Positions 1 through 9,398 of a stretch of 32,000 bases of DNA are shown piece after piece. The notes beneath the pieces are model-generated. The model was given only the letters and a program-made list of their open reading frames with translations. It was not told where the DNA came from and did not search any database. A program made the position numbers and the translations under genes. The stretch comes from Wallemia ichthyophaga EXF-994 (lineage: Eukaryota; Fungi; Basidiomycota), in the NCBI RefSeq assembly GCF_000400465.1, contig NW_008806277.1, positions 30,001-62,000 of the forward strand, written 5' to 3'. Each line of letters begins with the position of its first letter. Within the stretch, counting starts at the first letter, position 1.

Positions 1-76
1 AATCCGGTTAAATGGCATCTGCATTGTTTTCTGAGCCACTACTATCTAAGCATTTTCGTTATTCCAATATTTCATA

Positions 77-495
77 GCGTTTGAAATGGTTGAGATTGAG
101 ACACTGTCTCTCAATCGAATACCCGTAGATTGTCTTTGGCAGCGTGAGGAAGAATTTAAAATGACCTGAAGCATTGGCAGAGTTTTAATTCTATTTCTTT
201 AGGCCTTTTTTACACTCTTCACGTCAGCTCGTCACCCTCGAATTAAACCCCTCTTCGGAAAGGTTTCTGGGTTTCAGCTAGTAAGATTAACAGAATACTT
301 GGAAGCAAAGTGACTACAAGAATTGTTTACTAAGGGATTTTCCAATGTGTGCTATGTGGGCGTCTATTAACCGAGCGTAGCTCAACGATACAGCCTCAAT
401 CTTGCAGCAACATAGATTATCTCAGCAGGGAGCCTTGCGAAGGACTTCTTGTTGGATGTTTTGTCGTCTGTGGATTGCTTTGTCTTGGTGGTTGA
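77..495 (-). pseudogene. Degenerate paralogue of the neighbouring F-box-like gene (fragmented, multiple stops)
   Basis: Minus-strand fragments SFARLPAEII (about 415-444) and YSIERQCLNLNHF (83-121). The latter matches YSIEVLELNLEHF (1872-1910) of the adjacent gene. No continuous ORF; boundaries approximate. Confidence 0.4.
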
Positions 496-1060
496 GGTTA
501 GATAGAGAGATGAAGTGAGGGATGGAGAGCAAACCTACCAGGAGTATCGCTCAAAGTGGACTTTGAACGGACTGCCAGATCTTAGTTGGAGTTCAGAAAG
601 AGTTAAATGAGCGGAGATAAAGCTTACTGGGAGTAGCAAAGACCATTTACAGGGAAAGGGCTAAACCCGCCATACTATGGTCCACAAGACGGCGAGCCGC
701 GAGGAAATAAGTGTGGGCCACTACAGAACGCAGCGGTGTTAGAGTCGTTAATGTACTTTGACTCACGTGACTCTTGCCTTGTCTGTTGTGTTTCACTAAC
801 CCGTTACCCTCGTTCCTAGTCTCGCGGCTAACAGCGTTGAAAGAGGGGTGATGAGCAAAACAAAGTACCATCTCAAAGCATACATATGAGAAAATTAGAA
901 ATCACGATATCAACGCCTATCGCATGTCTGCTGATGACTGTGAAAAAAGCGTGAAAATCAAATGCATCATACAAGTTGGATAAAGCTGGATATCATTAGG
1001 ACGTCGTGCGTGTGAGTAGGTGGATATAATAAGAGGGGAAACACTGAGTTAAGCTGGCAT

Positions 1061-2139
1061 CTAGCGAGTTAGTTCTGGCGAGTTCTGCCAAGCAGAGTTT
1101 TGCAAAGTGAGCAGTTTATGAGTTTCGAGGCATTCCGCAATGAGACCTGGATAATTATGTTCCATCTCCTCTCTTACCGAATAAGCCCTGTAAAGAATCT
1201 CCGCAGTCTGTTTATCCTGCAGGAGGACTCTCAAGGAACCTCGAACGAACGGAAAAAGTTTACAACATTTCTGCAAGTCGTTATTCAGCGCGTTGAATTT
1301 TAAAGCGACAATATCGATATGAAACCCATTTAAAGCGCGCATCTCATCCTTTTGCGTCCGTTTTGTGATATAGTATTTCAGCAGAGCACGTTTCTTACAT
1401 GTCCTGTTTACAGAGTCTGTAAACTTACCAAATGTACGTAATGTATGTGTGTATCAAATTTAGTGGTGTATCGGTGGTGATTGAGCCATTTACCAGTTCG
1501 TAATTCTTGAAAATTATCATGTTCGGTTTACGCATGTAGCAGCTGTCCAGCGCGTTGAGAATTGCAATGAAGTGCTCCTGCGTTATCAAATCGAATCCAG
1601 GCATATCGACCAATGATGGTCGATGGATGCGGAGTAATTTGATACGGAAGTATTTGTCGCATATCGCAATGGCTAGCATCGCGGCTTTGAGATGTGTCAT
1701 GTGGTCTATGTTTATCGTTAGCTCTGTCGCACCGTCTGACCTACCAATCAGGAGATGTGTATTTTCAGTCTCGATGAGCGCGTCGAGTGTGAGAGTGAAC
1801 TTTTGCAGTACAGGCATTTTGTTGATGCATGTGGATAGCTGTGGACATGCTAATAACCGTGTGGATTTATTGAAGTGTTCCAGATTCAACTCAAGTACTT
1901 CTATCGAGTAGAGGAAATCTGTTGGTTGGAGTACACAGTTTTGAAGGAATGTCAGGTAAGATATCAGCTCAGCTGGTTTCGTGTTGTTTGTTGGTTTCAG
2001 AGATTGTATAATCAGACTTTTGGGATGTTTGCGGGTGAGTTTGTAGCTATTCTTAAGAGACGGCAAACAGCTCAGTTGCACCATGTAAGCTAATAATCCT
2101 ACAAACGACATCATCTGGGAAGCTCCAGAATCCTGCCAT
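1061..2139 (-). CDS. Hypothetical protein with N-terminal F-box-like motif; reading frame interrupted twice (intron or frameshift)
   Basis: ATG at 2139 gives MAGFWSFPDDVVCRIISLHGATELFAVS* (stop 2053-2055), one base out of frame with the long ORF ending at 1425. A 25-nt GT-AG segment (1404-1428) joins that ORF in frame to ORF 1061-1342. The F-box call rests on the FP-D-V--I spacing only. Confidence 0.5.
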
Positions 2140-2270
2140 AGGAGAATTAGGTAGAGAAGATGGGGAAAACGGGGAAGAAAAAGCACAAAGCGCTCACAAC
2201 AGACACAAAACACCCGCCCACGCCAATTATACAGCCACAAAGAATCTATGGATGCAACAAGCAACTAAAT

Positions 2271-2764
2271 TTAGTTGCGGCTCTTGAAGTAGTCCAAGAG
2301 GACGTTAAGACCCTCAGACTCAACACCAAAGTCGCGGACAACGACGCAAGAGGTACCGACGACCTTACGTGCGTTACCCTCTCTGTCGATCTTGCAGAGA
2401 CCAGCCCAGGTACCCAAAACCTTGGCGTCGGAGACCTTGATGAGGTTGATTTGGTGCTCTGCGCAGAGAGCTTCGATGAGCTTGATGTACTCAGCCTCAG
2501 TGCAGGTTTCGACGAGCACACAGAGGTGGGCAGCTCTACGGTCGAGAGCCTTAGCACACTCTCTCAAACCACGGGCGAGACCATCGTGGTAGAGGGCGTT
2601 CTTGAGAACTTGTTGGAGGGCTTCCTCGACAGACATCTTGCCTGCTGGAGCAGCCTCAGCGACTTCGACCTCTTCTTGAGGAACTTCGACTTGTTGTTCA
2701 CCGTTTTCAGACTGTAGAGAGTGAGCAGGGGTGTATTAAATCCACTGCACACCAAACACACCAT
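2271..2764 (-). CDS. RPS12: 40S ribosomal protein eS12
   Basis: [29 protein letters not shown]...[20 protein letters not shown] is the eS12/L7Ae-family signature. ATG 2764-2762, 50-nt intron 2712-2761 (GTGTGT...CTACAG), 147 aa. Confidence 0.96.
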
Positions 2765-3176
2765 TATAGATTCTTATGCTAAGTCAGTCAATCGTAAGAC
2801 GTCGTCCTTCGTTCTTAGCTGTTAGCTGGGTCGAAGAGAGAAGGCGGCGTTACAGATTTTATCCACCGAAAAATTTAAATTGTGTGCGAGTGTATGAGTT
2901 TGTAGAGAGTTTGTGGGGTTTGTGGATTTATGCTTACGTATACTTACATCCTCTACTCCTTCGGCGATGGAGTTGTGCGGGGTTTACGCTGTGTGCTGAT
3001 GTAGACGATTGCATGTACGTATATCATTCTGAAAGTAGGCTCTAACCACACTTTTTATTTAAATACACACTGCGAGCTTTTCAGACAATTTTACAGAAAA
3101 TTTCACTATTGTTTAACTAACAACAAACGGTATTATGTATTTAATGTAAAAACAGAAACCCGGTAAACAAAACAAT

Positions 3177-3548
3177 TTAGATGAGTGGGATTGGAGTACA
3201 GTTGATACCGAGGAGACCATCTGAAGATGCCTTCTCGCAGCAGACTGGGGTGTTCTTGCATACGTCTGTGGAGCGTGTTAGTTATATTTACGACGCACGT
3301 AGATTCCAAATACCTTGTAATGCTACTCCGATGAGAAGAGGTATTTGAGTACATTGGATAGCAACTTGGTCGAGAATATCGCCTGTGTGGAGAAGACCGT
3401 CTTCTTCACCAGTGCTTGATTGCTTGTCTTTTGTAGTATCACAACATGAAGTAAGTCCGGTATTACATGAGCCGACTGATGAGCCGCCTGATGGTCTGGC
3501 GAGGGCAGATGCGATGACGGCGGAGATGGCGAGGGTTTGAGCGATCAT
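3177..3548 (-). CDS. Class I hydrophobin (107 aa, secreted)
   Basis: Signal peptide MIAQTLAISAVIASALA. Removing the 48-nt intron 3266-3313 (GTATTT...CTAAC...CAG) gives the 8-Cys pattern C-CC-C-C-CC-C (SCNTG, SCCD, IQCTQ, DVCKN, VCCE, INCTP). Confidence 0.93.
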
Positions 3549-3955
3549 TGTTTAGAGAGCAAGATGAGTTGTGAGGATGCAACATGGGTAGAGCTAGGCT
3601 ATTTAACCATCTGAGAAGCGCACTAAAATGATTATTAGCGCTATCTTATTTTAGTGCACTTTTAGCGTGCATTATGAGCTCCGGAATGTGGTATTTGCAT
3701 TGAATATCATGTGAAATAAAAAGTGTATGTTTGCATGTGCGTACGTTTACACAAAAATATTTAGAAAAACACTCCTCCACACGGGCACACCTCTTGCGTA
3801 TAAGACGAGTAAAATTTTCAAAAGGCAACACAAAAACAAATCAATTATTAAACGAGGAAAGTGATGCAGCGTTGTTGTTAGTGAGAGTGCGAGACAACCA
3901 AGTCTCAACTGGTATCCTGTATGAAATCTGTAAAGTGACAAGTTGAACGACCCCA

Positions 3956-4178
3956 TTAGTCCTTGTAAATGAGCAAAGGTTCACCCGGTTCATGAACCTC
4001 TGGAATTGTACATTTCAAATCGAAAGCCTTTGAGAGAACAATTTTGAATATTTTCTGTACGTGAATGGAGTGCGAAGTGGAGCAGAAGATGAGAGGAGCG
4101 TGCATAGCCTTTGCGAATCTCTTTGCCTGTGTTGATGAGTGGGTAAGTGAATTGAAAGTGCAAATATCGCTCCTACCT
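3956..4178 (-). pseudogene. Orphan 3' fragment of SPG1/TEM1 (last intron plus last exon) left at the duplication junction
   Basis: Identical to 8592-8814 ([28 protein letters not shown]...) but preceded by unrelated sequence instead of the GTPase exons. Confidence 0.88.
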
Positions 4179-4267
4179 AGCATTGCATTGAGGTGAAGCA
4201 ATCAATATGAAAACGTACAATGACTTGATTTTATGAATATTTGCGTACACCTTTTGCGTTTCAATTG

Positions 4268-4274
4268 TATATAT
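4268..4274 (+). promoter_or_regulatory. Possible upstream TATA-like element for the permuted tRNA
   Basis: TATATAT about 55 bp upstream of the 3' half. The region is AT-rich, so this could be chance. Confidence 0.3.
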
Positions 4275-4328
4275 TTTTAAGCTGCAAAGGAATTCTCAGT
4301 TCAAAATAACTCAACGGGAGTAGCTGAT

Positions 4329-4404
4329 ATCGAAAGGTTGCAGGTTCGAGCCCTGCGTCGGTCACCACGGCCGGCTGGCTCAATGGTAGAGTATTCGACT
4401 ACGG
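4329..4404 (+). tRNA. Circularly permuted tRNA-Arg(ACG): 3' half 4329-4364, CCAC spacer 4365-4368, 5' half 4369-4404
   Basis: Reassembled 72-nt cloverleaf: acceptor GGCCGGC/GTCGGTC-A73 (two G.U pairs), D arm GCTC-AATGGTA-GAGT, anticodon arm TTCGA-CT ACG GA-TCGAA, variable loop AGGTT, T arm GCAGG-TTCGAGC-CCTGC. The break is exactly between positions 37 and 38. Confidence 0.9.
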
Positions 4405-4415
4405 CATTGAAATAA

Positions 4416-4422
4416 TTTTTTT
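4416..4422 (+). terminator. Oligo-dT (T7) RNA polymerase III terminator
   Basis: TTTTTTT begins 11 nt after the end of the tRNA 5' half. Confidence 0.7.
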
Positions 4423-4712
4423 CTTATTCACTTTATAAGTGCGGCAGAATAACGACCGTTATCATCAATTGCGTTTCACTCAAGCCAAATTTTTAGCCCT
4501 ATCACTGACACTCACGTTTCAACATAAAAAGTGATACGAACATAAAACTTTCTTCTCAAATGATTTAAGGTTTTGAAGTACTTGTATTATTTGCACGACT
4601 CTCGTTGGTTGTTTTCTAGATTTACATTATTAAGTGAATCCGGTTAAATGGCATCTGCATTGTTTTCTGAGCCACTACTATCTAAGCATTTTCGTTATTC
4701 CAATATTTCATA

Positions 4713-5131
4713 GCGTTTGAAATGGTTGAGATTGAGACACTGTCTCTCAATCGAATACCCGTAGATTGTCTTTGGCAGCGTGAGGAAGAATTTAAAATGA
4801 CCTGAAGCATTGGCAGAGTTTTAATTCTATTTCTTTAGGCCTTTTTTACACTCTTCACGTCAGCTCGTCACCCTCGAATTAAACCCCTCTTCGGAAAGGT
4901 TTCTGGGTTTCAGCTAGTAAGATTAACAGAATACTTGGAAGCAAAGTGACTACAAGAATTGTTTACTAAGGGATTTTCCAATGTGTGCTATGTGGGCGTC
5001 TATTAACCGAGCGTAGCTCAACGATACAGCCTCAATCTTGCAGCAACATAGATTATCTCAGCAGGGAGCCTTGCGAAGGACTTCTTGTTGGATGTTTTGT
5101 CGTCTGTGGATTGCTTTGTCTTGGTGGTTGA
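4713..5131 (-). pseudogene. Second copy of the degenerate F-box-like paralogue
   Basis: Same sequence as 77-495, shifted by 4636. Confidence 0.4.
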
Positions 5132-5696
5132 GGTTAGATAGAGAGATGAAGTGAGGGATGGAGAGCAAACCTACCAGGAGTATCGCTCAAAGTGGACTTT
5201 GAACGGACTGCCAGATCTTAGTTGGAGTTCAGAAAGAGTTAAATGAGCGGAGATAAAGCTTACTGGGAGTAGCAAAGACCATTTACAGGGAAAGGGCTAA
5301 ACCCGCCATACTATGGTCCACAAGACGGCGAGCCGCGAGGAAATAAGTGTGGGCCACTACAGAACGCAGCGGTGTTAGAGTCGTTAATGTACTTTGACTC
5401 ACGTGACTCTTGCCTTGTCTGTTGTGTTTCACTAACCCGTTACCCTCGTTCCTAGTCTCGCGGCTAACAGCGTTGAAAGAGGGGTGATGAGCAAAACAAA
5501 GTACCATCTCAAAGCATACATATGAGAAAATTAGAAATCACGATATCAACGCCTATCGCATGTCTGCTGATGACTGTGAAAAAAGCGTGAAAATCAAATG
5601 CATCATACAAGTTGGATAAAGCTGGATATCATTAGGACGTCGTGCGTGTGAGTAGGTGGATATAATAAGAGGGGAAACACTGAGTTAAGCTGGCAT

Positions 5697-6775
5697 CTAG
5701 CGAGTTAGTTCTGGCGAGTTCTGCCAAGCAGAGTTTTGCAAAGTGAGCAGTTTATGAGTTTCGAGGCATTCCGCAATGAGACCTGGATAATTATGTTCCA
5801 TCTCCTCTCTTACCGAATAAGCCCTGTAAAGAATCTCCGCAGTCTGTTTATCCTGCAGGAGGACTCTCAAGGAACCTCGAACGAACGGAAAAAGTTTACA
5901 ACATTTCTGCAAGTCGTTATTCAGCGCGTTGAATTTTAAAGCGACAATATCGATATGAAACCCATTTAAAGCGCGCATCTCATCCTTTTGCGTCCGTTTT
6001 GTGATATAGTATTTCAGCAGAGCACGTTTCTTACATGTCCTGTTTACAGAGTCTGTAAACTTACCAAATGTACGTAATGTATGTGTGTATCAAATTTAGT
6101 GGTGTATCGGTGGTGATTGAGCCATTTACCAGTTCGTAATTCTTGAAAATTATCATGTTCGGTTTACGCATGTAGCAGCTGTCCAGCGCGTTGAGAATTG
6201 CAATGAAGTGCTCCTGCGTTATCAAATCGAATCCAGGCATATCGACCAATGATGGTCGATGGATGCGGAGTAATTTGATACGGAAGTATTTGTCGCATAT
6301 CGCAATGGCTAGCATCGCGGCTTTGAGATGTGTCATGTGGTCTATGTTTATCGTTAGCTCTGTCGCACCGTCTGACCTACCAATCAGGAGATGTGTATTT
6401 TCAGTCTCGATGAGCGCGTCGAGTGTGAGAGTGAACTTTTGCAGTACAGGCATTTTGTTGATGCATGTGGATAGCTGTGGACATGCTAATAACCGTGTGG
6501 ATTTATTGAAGTGTTCCAGATTCAACTCAAGTACTTCTATCGAGTAGAGGAAATCTGTTGGTTGGAGTACACAGTTTTGAAGGAATGTCAGGTAAGATAT
6601 CAGCTCAGCTGGTTTCGTGTTGTTTGTTGGTTTCAGAGATTGTATAATCAGACTTTTGGGATGTTTGCGGGTGAGTTTGTAGCTATTCTTAAGAGACGGC
6701 AAACAGCTCAGTTGCACCATGTAAGCTAATAATCCTACAAACGACATCATCTGGGAAGCTCCAGAATCCTGCCAT
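5697..6775 (-). CDS. Second copy of the interrupted F-box-like hypothetical gene
   Basis: Same sequence as 1061-2139, shifted by 4636, including both frame interruptions. Confidence 0.5.
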
Positions 6776-6906
6776 AGGAGAATTAGGTAGAGAAGATGGG
6801 GAAAACGGGGAAGAAAAAGCACAAAGCGCTCACAACAGACACAAAACACCCGCCCACGCCAATTATACAGCCACAAAGAATCTATGGATGCAACAAGCAA
6901 CTAAAT

Positions 6907-7400
6907 TTAGTTGCGGCTCTTGAAGTAGTCCAAGAGGACGTTAAGACCCTCAGACTCAACACCAAAGTCGCGGACAACGACGCAAGAGGTACCGACGACC
7001 TTACGTGCGTTACCCTCTCTGTCGATCTTGCAGAGACCAGCCCAGGTACCCAAAACCTTGGCGTCGGAGACCTTGATGAGGTTGATTTGGTGCTCTGCGC
7101 AGAGAGCTTCGATGAGCTTGATGTACTCAGCCTCAGTGCAGGTTTCGACGAGCACACAGAGGTGGGCAGCTCTACGGTCGAGAGCCTTAGCACACTCTCT
7201 CAAACCACGGGCGAGACCATCGTGGTAGAGGGCGTTCTTGAGAACTTGTTGGAGGGCTTCCTCGACAGACATCTTGCCTGCTGGAGCAGCCTCAGCGACT
7301 TCGACCTCTTCTTGAGGAACTTCGACTTGTTGTTCACCGTTTTCAGACTGTAGAGAGTGAGCAGGGGTGTATTAAATCCACTGCACACCAAACACACCAT
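6907..7400 (-). CDS. RPS12: 40S ribosomal protein eS12, second copy
   Basis: Identical to 2271-2764; intron 7348-7397. Confidence 0.96.
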
Positions 7401-7812
7401 TATAGATTCTTATGCTAAGTCAGTCAATCGTAAGACGTCGTCCTTCGTTCTTAGCTGTTAGCTGGGTCGAAGAGAGAAGGCGGCGTTACAGATTTTATCC
7501 ACCGAAAAATTTAAATTGTGTGCGAGTGTATGAGTTTGTAGAGAGTTTGTGGGGTTTGTGGATTTATGCTTACGTATACTTACATCCTCTACTCCTTCGG
7601 CGATGGAGTTGTGCGGGGTTTACGCTGTGTGCTGATGTAGACGATTGCATGTACGTATATCATTCTGAAAGTAGGCTCTAACCACACTTTTTATTTAAAT
7701 ACACACTGCGAGCTTTTCAGACAATTTTACAGAAAATTTCACTATTGTTTAACTAACAACAAACGGTATTATGTATTTAATGTAAAAACAGAAACCCGGT
7801 AAACAAAACAAT

Positions 7813-8184
7813 TTAGATGAGTGGGATTGGAGTACAGTTGATACCGAGGAGACCATCTGAAGATGCCTTCTCGCAGCAGACTGGGGTGTTCTTGCATACG
7901 TCTGTGGAGCGTGTTAGTTATATTTACGACGCACGTAGATTCCAAATACCTTGTAATGCTACTCCGATGAGAAGAGGTATTTGAGTACATTGGATAGCAA
8001 CTTGGTCGAGAATATCGCCTGTGTGGAGAAGACCGTCTTCTTCACCAGTGCTTGATTGCTTGTCTTTTGTAGTATCACAACATGAAGTAAGTCCGGTATT
8101 ACATGAGCCGACTGATGAGCCGCCTGATGGTCTGGCGAGGGCAGATGCGATGACGGCGGAGATGGCGAGGGTTTGAGCGATCAT
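7813..8184 (-). CDS. Class I hydrophobin, second copy
   Basis: Identical to 3177-3548; intron 7902-7949. Confidence 0.93.
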
Positions 8185-8591
8185 TGTTTAGAGAGCAAGA
8201 TGAGTTGTGAGGATGCAACATGGGTAGAGCTAGGCTATTTAACCATCTGAGAAGCGCACTAAAATGATTATTAGCGCTATCTTATTTTAGTGCACTTTTA
8301 GCGTGCATTATGAGCTCCGGAATGTGGTATTTGCATTGAATATCATGTGAAATAAAAAGTGTATGTTTGCATGTGCGTACGTTTACACAAAAATATTTAG
8401 AAAAACACTCCTCCACACGGGCACACCTCTTGCGTATAAGACGAGTAAAATTTTCAAAAGGCAACACAAAAACAAATCAATTATTAAACGAGGAAAGTGA
8501 TGCAGCGTTGTTGTTAGTGAGAGTGCGAGACAACCAAGTCTCAACTGGTATCCTGTATGAAATCTGTAAAGTGACAAGTTGAACGACCCCA

Positions 8592-9398
8592 TTAGTCCTT
8601 GTAAATGAGCAAAGGTTCACCCGGTTCATGAACCTCTGGAATTGTACATTTCAAATCGAAAGCCTTTGAGAGAACAATTTTGAATATTTTCTGTACGTGA
8701 ATGGAGTGCGAAGTGGAGCAGAAGATGAGAGGAGCGTGCATAGCCTTTGCGAATCTCTTTGCCTGTGTTGATGAGTGGGTAAGTGAATTGAAAGTGCAAA
8801 TATCGCTCCTACCTGCTTGGTTATCTCCTCCTGATCTTCCTTAGGCAGACCAGCGAATACATCGAACTTGGTACCTACGAGGAAAGGGATTGCAGTTTTG
8901 TTAAACCCTCTAGCCTGTCTGTACCACTCTTTTATCGAATTAAGGGTGCTCTTCCTGGAAAGATCGAACATGAAGAGAATTGCAACTGCGTCATTGCAAA
9001 CGAGTGGGAGCATGTTGACGAATTCGCGTTGGCCTGTGCGACGAGAATGAGAATGACAATGAAAGTGATTTCAAAGGAAAGTTAATCCCCCAGATAAAGC
9101 CACAACGCACCACCTAGATCCCAAATGGAGAAAGTAATTTCAGTCTGGCGTATGGATATAGTCTTTTCCATAAAGTTTACGCCTGTAAGCGGGTGATTGA
9201 GTGATGCTCTTTCAATAGCCCAAGCTACACGCACCTAGCGTTTGTATGTAGTCTTCATCGAATGAACCTCTGTCGCGCGTAAGTGTAAGAAGCGTCTAAG
9301 AAACGCATCCACTGCACCCACTCCACATATTTAACCATCAAAGACGTCTTCCCAATGCTGCTGTCCCCCACCAACGCTGTTTTGAGATAAAGGGCCAT
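8592..9398 (-). CDS. SPG1: Spg1/Tem1 septation-initiation / mitotic-exit small GTPase
   Basis: Spliced across 4 introns: [36 protein letters not shown]...[47 protein letters not shown]...VGTKFD. An extra 5' exon is possible. Confidence 0.93.

Follow-up and report, generated by a model that had tools for sequence, protein, structure and literature searches.

How can a tRNA be made from a gene in which its 3′ half is written before its 5′ half, and can such a gene be at home in a fungus? The question is raised by a short element on the forward strand of the salt-loving basidiomycete Wallemia ichthyophaga EXF-994, at positions 4329–4404 of a stretch of 32,000 nucleotides (nt) from contig NW_008806277.1. 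This stretch is called the window below, and coordinates refer to it unless another contig is named. An earlier note, made from the letters of the window alone, had read the element as a circularly permuted tRNA-Arg(ACG) gene, broken between tRNA positions 37 and 38, in a fungal nuclear genome. The answer that we reach is that the element is very probably a functional and evolutionarily old gene of this kind, namely a circularly permuted nuclear tRNA-Arg(ACG) gene of the 37/38 class (type II) in Wallemia (Basidiomycota, Wallemiomycetes). The reading of the note is supported, and it is now carried by four loci in three lineages at which the exons and several signals in the flanks have been kept. 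The fungal host genome is borne out by a 13-kilobase (kb) stretch that is 99.55% identical to the W. ichthyophaga assembly GCA_004918235.1, and the product of SKI3, a 946-amino-acid (aa) open reading frame (ORF) of the window, shares 99% identity with a protein known from W. ichthyophaga.

What does the element consist of? Direct reading of positions 4329–4404 gives ATCGAAAGGTTGCAGGTTCGAGCCCTGCGTCGGTCA, then CCAC, then GGCCGGCTGGCTCAATGGTAGAGTATTCGACTACGG. The first block (4329–4364) corresponds to tRNA positions 38–73 and comprises the 3′ strand of the anticodon stem, the variable loop, the T arm, the 3′ strand of the acceptor stem and the discriminator A73. The second block (4369–4404) corresponds to positions 1–37 and comprises the 5′ strand of the acceptor stem, the D arm, the 5′ strand of the anticodon stem, the anticodon ACG (4401–4403) and G37. 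The linker between them (4365–4368), which would cap the acceptor stem, reads as an encoded CCA directly after A73 followed by one C, and then G1 begins. Owing to the permutation, the B box (GGTTCGAGCC, 4343–4352) lies upstream of the true A box in the D arm of the 5′ half (4376–4386). When the two blocks are swapped, ARAGORN reports a tRNA-Arg(acg) of 72 nt with all four stems paired (7, 4, 5 and 5 base pairs, bp), including three G·U pairs (2:71, 6:67 and 10:25); G18G19, the TTCGA T-loop and A15/T48 are all in place. The two statements on which the earlier note was built, that the 3′ half precedes the 5′ half on the same strand at a distance of 4 nt and that the swapped halves make a perfect cloverleaf with an ACG anticodon, are exactly what the sequence reads. 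A 3′ half directly upstream of a 5′ half on one strand, with a short linker joining the acceptor ends, is the type II (37/38) arrangement, and the reordered halves give the canonical cloverleaf with universal elements and a defined anticodon that is expected of a permuted gene.

In its native order the element is invisible. Neither ARAGORN, with and without introns, nor Rfam at its gathering thresholds reports a tRNA anywhere in the 32,000 nt, because the halves are permuted and standard finders are expected to be blind to such genes; the note had foreseen this. It had also stated that no 5′ half lies upstream and no 3′ half downstream, and a search of both strands of the window with up to three mismatches agrees, finding no further copy of either half (none of 100 shuffled sequences gave a match). 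Since each half is unique in the window, the element does not belong to an intron-containing gene of the ordinary kind whose other half lies farther off.

Is the arrangement peculiar to one strain? The same permuted order, always broken at 37/38, recurs at four independent loci, which are spread over three Wallemia lineages of deep divergence. In W. ichthyophaga, the copy in GCA_004918235.1 is identical to that of the window at 76 of 76 positions, CCAC included, and partial contigs of the species also carry the permuted arrangement. The first W. mellicola locus (contig L007, with four more strains in L023–L026) has both halves identical to those of the window (36/36 each), a single A as linker and a neighbourhood syntenic with the window: DAHP synthase, Ras, hydrophobin, RPS12, a 350-aa gene, the permuted tRNA and ferrochelatase. 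The second W. mellicola locus, present in six strains and in one JGI metagenome contig whose proteins cluster at ≥90% identity with W. mellicola proteins, also has a single A as linker and adjoins a hydrophobin paralogue, tricalbin and a DAG-kinase-like gene. W. mellicola thus holds at least two permuted copies with unrelated flanks. In the third lineage, represented by ENA metagenome assemblies only, the permuted gene lies about 400 bp from RPS12 and again has A as its linker; the SKI3 protein of this lineage is 56–57% identical to those of both named species, which are 77% identical to each other. One ENA contig of this lineage (L016, locus 10935) stops inside the permuted tRNA while its sister contigs run through it, an end that hints at more than one copy in that genome.

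Two kinds of search, of the sort that the earlier note had proposed, gave permuted copies, one aware of permutation and one with the halves themselves. In the former, each 120-nt segment of about 342 kb of Wallemia DNA was joined to itself and submitted to ARAGORN with introns allowed; the gene was recovered at every permuted locus and there was no other match, and since all loci and nothing else came back, the scan serves as both a positive and a specificity control. In the latter, an exact search of the 5′ half against 241 million JGI metagenome records gave a sole match, the W. mellicola-like contig mentioned above, in which the 5′ half is itself preceded by the 3′ half and an A. Searches with the halves in the GTDB prokaryotic genomes and in IMG/VR gave no match, as expected, and the W. 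hederae locus that was fetched (L006) is rearranged and does not contain the permuted gene. The linker CCAC is confined to W. ichthyophaga. It is, on this distribution, derived in that species, because the linker is a single A at the other three loci; the CCAC junction, which the note had named as part of the circular intermediate, is not conserved among the loci.

How strongly has the tRNA been kept? W. ichthyophaga and the two W. mellicola loci agree in all 72 bases of the tRNA, and the 5′ half is identical (36/36) across all four loci. The 3′ half of the third lineage differs by three changes (T47C, G59A and C60T), all of them in the variable loop or the T-loop, and C68T, seen in one W. mellicola strain, replaces the pair G5:C68 by G5·U68. 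Between lineages, the 100-nt flanks show an identity of 0.58–0.64, compared with 0.54–0.58 for shuffled sequences, and over the syntenic block of about 13 kb blastn aligns the coding exons and the permuted tRNA only. The multiple alignment shows an invariant block that runs from A38 through to G37, with its limits exactly at 37|38. Such constraint across lineages, amid randomised flanks, is the signature that a functional tRNA with exon boundaries at the canonical 37/38 site would leave, and purifying selection on the permuted tRNA is evident from it. The earlier note had taken the undecayed stems as a sign of function; the cross-lineage constraint on the exons, together with the signals kept in the flanks, backs function far more strongly.

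What are these signals? The putative 5′ leader (4295–4328) would play the part of the 3′ portion of an intron, and the 3′ trailer (CATTGAAATAA, 4405–4415) that of its 5′ portion. The leader ends in CTG (4324–4326, at −5 to −3) followed by AT. A G stands at −3 before A38 at all four loci (ctGat, tcGat, ccGtc and tcGat) and could pair with C32 at each of them as the anticodon-intron (A-I) pair. The three leader bases at −5 to −3 (CUG, UCG, CCG and UCG, always pyrimidine-pyrimidine-G) are complementary to C35-G36-G37 at every locus and pair with them in both constrained and unconstrained folds. The pairing of position 32 with position −3, the 32:-3 rule, reportedly goes back to Baldi et al. in 1992. 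A conventional gene for comparison is the W. mellicola tRNA-Val(AAC), whose intron lies at 37/38 and has a G at −3 in both of its two alleles; a T-run follows this gene by a few nt, and AT-rich sequence lies upstream. The intron of this predicted gene shows the splicing pathway to be in use in W. mellicola. Since the G at −3 and the complementarity to the anticodon are shared with canonical introns, the leader of the permuted gene can be likened to the 3′ end, and its trailer to the 5′ end, of a Wallemia tRNA intron.

The two tRNA-Val(AAC) alleles were seen in different strains, with an intron of 28 nt in one (L009 17257–17357) and 43 nt in the other (L011 17248–17363), and their T-stems differ by compensatory changes, ATGAG/CTCAT against GCCGG/CCGGC. 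The 3′ part of this gene looks like a replacement, for which gene conversion with a different Val gene as donor would be one route.

The outer flanks hold candidate signals for RNA polymerase III (Pol III). A run of seven T (4416–4422), a putative Pol III terminator, follows the trailer, and a run of five to seven T begins 10 to 17 nt after G37 in every locus and strain, despite unrelated trailers. Upstream, a TATA-like motif (GTATATATTTTTAA, 4267–4280, about −62 to −49 from the start of the 3′ half) is a putative Pol III promoter element; a G(A/T)TAYAY motif occurs at about −66 to −51 at all four loci, as a weak consensus match in flanks that are otherwise randomised. The leader also contains an A-box-like sequence (TAACTCAACGG, 4307–4317), which is a weak match in the window (8/11, p ~0.04) and a better one at the second W. 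mellicola locus (9/11, p ~0.003), and which lies at a near-normal distance from the B box. Finally, a helix between about −36 to −16 of the leader and +1 to +15 of the trailer is predicted, with a different sequence at each locus. It is strong at both W. mellicola loci, with 10 bp (−14 to −16 kcal/mol) at the first and 13 bp (−15.1 kcal/mol) at the second, neither being equalled in 1000 shuffles, and in the third lineage it has 7 bp (−8.4 kcal/mol, p ~0.06 by shuffling), or 9 bp (−10.9 kcal/mol) in a slightly longer segment.

The trailers invite two side remarks on variation around the gene. Between W. ichthyophaga strains that are otherwise 98–99% identical, the sequence after G37 is wholly different, CATTGAAATAATTTTTTT in one and CAAGAGTGTATCTTTTTG in the other (window 4405–4440 compared with L001 16660–16715 and the end of L027), with the T-run kept at about the same distance. 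At the second W. mellicola locus, the annotation of four of the six strains places a retrotransposon gag ORF (PF14223; 11535–12204 in L009–L012) about 1 kb upstream of the tRNA. Some fungal long terminal repeat (LTR) elements typically insert close to Pol III genes, and this ORF could be indirect evidence of a Pol III-active locus.

How would such a gene be expressed and matured? Pol III would start some 30–35 nt upstream of the 3′ half, directed by the upstream TATA-like element and possibly also by the A-box-like leader motif acting with the B box; both candidate elements would place the start near −35, where the predicted leader-trailer helix begins. Recruitment of Pol III is the least certain step of this scheme, because the B box (4343–4352) precedes the true A box (4376–4386). 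The transcript would consist of the leader, the 3′ half, the linker of 1–4 nt, the 5′ half and the short trailer, and would stop at the T-run. It would fold into an ordinary tRNA body with the acceptor stem capped by the linker and the anticodon loop open, the leader and trailer taking the place of the ends of a canonical 37/38 intron, a role supported by the G at −3, by the anticodon-complementary leader bases and, at most loci, by the leader-trailer helix. The Sen complex, measuring from the mature domain, would then remove the leader and trailer, and a fungal tRNA ligase of the Trl1 type would join G37 to A38. RNase P would cut before G1, the 3′ end would be trimmed after A73, and CCA would be added or repaired; in W. 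ichthyophaga, loss of a single C would expose a ready-made CCA. If splicing came first, a circular intermediate would be formed, and if RNase P came first, a two-piece tRNA would be formed and then ligated. After editing of A34 to inosine, the product would read CGU, CGC and CGA. These three codons make up 114 of the 212 arginine codons (53%) in seven long ORFs of the window, and demand for tRNA-Arg(ICG) is high.

Several points weigh against taking the locus as a working gene, and they should be set beside the evidence above. The A and B boxes stand in reversed order, which should not suit TFIIIC, and the proposed promoter elements, the TATA-like sequence and the A-box-like leader motif, are weak consensus matches whose assignment is speculative; the latter is not significant at the first W. 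mellicola locus, being significant at two of the three loci tested. The leader-trailer helix is not significant in W. ichthyophaga itself. A strict bulge-helix-bulge (BHB) motif cannot be drawn on direct inspection, as one to three of the four central pairs form, depending on the locus. Conventional tRNA-Arg(ACG) genes may be present as well, in which case the permuted copies would be redundant and gene conversion could help to preserve their halves, and the case for function is a comparison of DNA throughout. With regard to the BHB motif, eukaryotic endonucleases find splice sites by their distance from the mature domain, aided by an anticodon-intron pair, and do not require it (PMC4090602).

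If the locus is not a tRNA gene in use, what else might it be? A conserved and transcribed locus could yield a product that does not take part in translation, either a non-coding RNA of tRNA-like form, its acceptor stem capped, resembling the tRNA-like module of bacterial YrlA and the Y RNAs, or a dedicated source of tRNA-Arg halves. Rfam does give some ground for the former: YrlA has the same succession of T-arm, capped acceptor-like stem and D-arm as the unprocessed Wallemia transcript would have, and in native order the locus matches the family (RF02553) at 4332–4399 with 28.6 bits and E = 8e-4 when the search is run in E-value mode. This score falls far short of the gathering threshold of 69, however, and the match covers only positions 23–88 of the 114 of the model, the tRNA-like module, so that it would simply reflect tRNA-like arms in permuted order. 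Furthermore, YrlA is a bacterial RNA that binds Ro60 and lacks an anticodon, whereas the Wallemia locus holds the whole of a canonical eukaryotic tRNA-Arg(ACG), the sequence of its anticodon loop being intact and divided precisely where canonical introns lie. The conserved stretch has its limits exactly at 37|38, the leaders share the G at −3 with a real Wallemia tRNA intron, and the flanks bear no resemblance to a Ro-binding stem. Membership in YrlA or the Y RNAs was rejected, the match being below the gathering threshold and the Ro-binding stem missing, and a non-translating product in general seems unlikely to us. Alternatively, the locus might be a dead rearranged relic, for example of a tandem tRNA pair, whose halves are preserved by gene conversion from conventional tRNA-Arg(ACG) genes. 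Concerted evolution is a familiar behaviour of tRNA gene families, but a relic would have to have retained one and the same permuted order at four loci, although neutral DNA is saturated between the lineages; it would also need the T-run, the G at −3 and the anticodon-complementary leader bases at every locus, and a leader-trailer helix of differing sequence at three of the four. Gene conversion leaves unexplained both the conserved features outside the tRNA and the two paralogous copies in W. mellicola. When the leader was aligned as a decayed 5′ half and the trailer as a decayed 3′ half, the local alignments were mostly not significant (p ~0.01 for the leader of the second W. mellicola locus, p ~0.1 for W. 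ichthyophaga). A relic of a tandem duplication in particular was set aside, as the A-box-like motif is too close to the 3′ half for an undeleted relic, and is kept as a weak idea. A dead relic is, in our estimate, very unlikely.

The encoded CCA of W. ichthyophaga suggests a further possibility, namely that a mature or nicked tRNA was recently retro-copied. Reverse transcription would run from position 37 to position 1, add a base, jump to the CCA end and continue from 76 to 38. An encoded CCA is not usual in eukaryotic tRNA genes (PMC3978253), and in the window CCA directly follows A73 with one extra base before G1, as this route would leave it. On the minus strand, TGGTGACCGACG... resembles a primer-binding site, and the element could be an extended site of this kind belonging to an LTR retrotransposon on that strand. 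The CCA is not ancestral, however, since W. mellicola, at either locus, and the third lineage have a single A as linker, and the locus is old, syntenic and undecayed rather than recent; within the window, the element is flanked neither by an LTR or a direct repeat nor by a retroelement ORF. A retro-copy of a mature tRNA was therefore ruled out as an account of the present locus by the derived CCA and the synteny, and the primer-binding site was discarded for want of an LTR or retroelement around the element in the window. Taken together we regard this explanation as highly improbable. An RNA-mediated origin of the ancestral permuted gene is possible, as an account of how it arose and not of what it does now. 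An assembly artefact, finally, either a mis-join in a tRNA gene or a by-product of a 4.6-kb duplication, has in its favour that the window contains such a tandem duplication, 100% identical and without counterpart in other assemblies, and that de Bruijn contigs built from short reads come to an end inside the 5′ half. Against it, at least 14 independent assemblies, from different assemblers and different samples, show the same adjacency of 3′ half, linker and 5′ half (IDBA assemblies of two species at NCBI, ENA metagenomes and one JGI metagenome). The junction of the duplication, at 4178|4179, lies 150 bp from the element, and strains with a single copy of the unit have the element too, so the element was rejected as the junction of the duplication. 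The chance of an artefact is negligible.

If the permuted tRNA-Arg(ACG) gene is functional, how far might the arrangement extend? We would put forward tentatively, at slightly less than even confidence, that all genes of Wallemia for tRNA-Arg(ACG/ICG), an essential tRNA, are permuted, so that the fungus would rely on them, and that they are matured by the ruler mechanism of the heterotetrameric Sen endonuclease, a Trl1-type ligase that gives a circular or two-piece intermediate, and RNase P after transcription by Pol III, driven by TFIIIC and TFIIIB on inverted boxes. Indirect hints that conventional genes for this anticodon are lacking are the permuted state of the sole JGI match to the 5′ half and the 53% share of CGU, CGC and CGA among the arginine codons. 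They would then form the first such family outside algae, nucleomorphs and archaea, ancient within the Wallemiomycetes and amplified after the permutation.

How does the Wallemia gene compare with the permuted genes already described? The circularly permuted tRNA genes of algae were reportedly described by Soma et al. in 2007 and Maruyama et al. in 2010, and those of the archaeon Thermofilum pendens reportedly by Chan, Cozen and Lowe in 2011. With the type II genes of Ostreococcus, Micromonas, the nucleomorph of Bigelowiella natans and Cyanidioschyzon merolae, the Wallemia gene shares the 3′-half-first order on one strand, the short intervening sequence joining the acceptor ends, the break at 37/38, the T-stretch downstream, the AT-rich or TATA-like sequence upstream and the possible pairing of leader with trailer. 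The expected maturation, by the intron-splicing machinery followed by RNase P and 3′ trimming, is also the same, as a prediction in Wallemia; permuted tRNAs of algae mature via a circular intermediate (PMC3978253). The differences lie partly in the host, which is a non-photosynthetic fungus, and partly in the gene. Instead of a strict BHB, Wallemia has the G at −3 and the anticodon-complementary leader of ordinary eukaryotic introns; its linker is very short, 1 nt or, with an encoded CCA, 4 nt; and one permuted tRNA species has been found so far, of which each W. mellicola genome has two copies or more. The ligase of fungi is of the Trl1 type (5′-phosphate) and their promoter depends on TFIIIC, whereas C. 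merolae appears to be without the box-binding subunits of TFIIIC (PMC3978253). The tRNA-iMet and tRNA-Tyr genes of T. pendens resemble the Wallemia gene in their extremely short intervening sequence (1 nt in tRNA-Tyr), and in that archaeon CCA is gene-encoded as it is in the W. ichthyophaga copy (PMC3978253); the archaeal junction, however, is at 59/60 in the T-loop, with an extra intron at 37/38 and a BHB-dependent endonuclease. In the split tRNA genes of Nanoarchaeum equitans and Caldivirga, 5′ and 3′ halves are likewise joined at or near the anticodon loop, but there the halves are separate genes and transcripts, whereas those of Wallemia are 1–4 nt apart in inverted order.

An ordinary intron-containing fungal tRNA gene offers a further comparison. 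The W. mellicola tRNA-Val(AAC) gene has the same 37/38 boundary, the same G at −3, a downstream T-run and AT-rich sequence upstream, and the predicted permuted precursor corresponds to an ordinary pre-tRNA with its intron loop opened and its acceptor ends closed. The halves of the Wallemia tRNA-Arg are swapped, in contrast, and its A and B boxes inverted, and ligation would give a circle or need a two-piece intermediate.

The element has a neighbourhood of its own interest. Nearby genes in the window encode RPS12, a hydrophobin, a Ras-like GTPase and DAHP synthase; a small ORF gave no match in an exact look-up. A tandem-duplicated unit of 4636 bp (4179–8814) is apparent from the fact that positions 1–4178 equal positions 4637–8814 at 100%. 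The unit carries the permuted tRNA, an unnamed gene, RPS12, the hydrophobin and the 3′ part of the Ras-like gene, and since the element lies inside it, a second permuted copy is probably present just upstream of the start of the window. In GCA_004918235.1 the unit is single-copy, the alignment ending at window position 4179 and the ferrochelatase gene following, and the Logan contig L001 runs straight through 8814/8815, again as a single-copy unit. The duplication is either a very recent strain-specific event or an assembly artefact.

Two further observations were made on the contigs. L001 and L027, Logan contigs from different sequencing runs, end at the same 31-mer, corresponding to window position 4376 (TGGCTCAATGG...ACGGCA), inside the 5′ half. 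The shared end implies a branch in the de Bruijn graph, that is, another sequence in the samples with the 5′ half and the C that follows it; candidates are a second permuted copy, an intron-containing copy and co-occurring W. mellicola, and a conventional intronless gene would not explain the end. The deposited W. ichthyophaga model E3P91_01722 (L005 10001–11703), of 528 aa, fuses RPS12 with its unnamed neighbour. The corresponding region lies at about 1061–2720 and 5697–7360 on the minus strand of the window, and W. mellicola has two genes there, of 146 aa and 350 aa; the fused model is probably an annotation error.

What, then, does the finding mean? The earlier note knew of no fungal example, and full-text searches of the literature to 2026, a 2026 review included, return no permuted tRNA gene in fungi, the eukaryotic cases being unicellular algae and nucleomorphs, beside which one archaeon is reported; on Wallemia tRNAs, the same kind of search returns nothing beyond gene totals. 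The persistence of permuted genes has been linked to endonucleases that recognise BHB motifs and to TATA-driven transcription independent of TFIIIC (PMC3978253). The Wallemia gene would represent a known architecture, type II, in an unexpected kingdom, and the comparative support for it is strong. It bears on the origin of permuted genes, as its leader and trailer still resemble the two ends of a canonical intron. If the gene is what it seems, routine annotation misses a heavily used tRNA, which would skew tRNA gene counts and analyses of codon usage and tRNA supply. A culturable fungus, or expression in yeast, could then address how inverted boxes are transcribed and whether circular intermediates are made by Trl1. 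Above all, if true, it would mean that a permuted arrangement can arise and persist with the ordinary tRNA machinery of a fungus.

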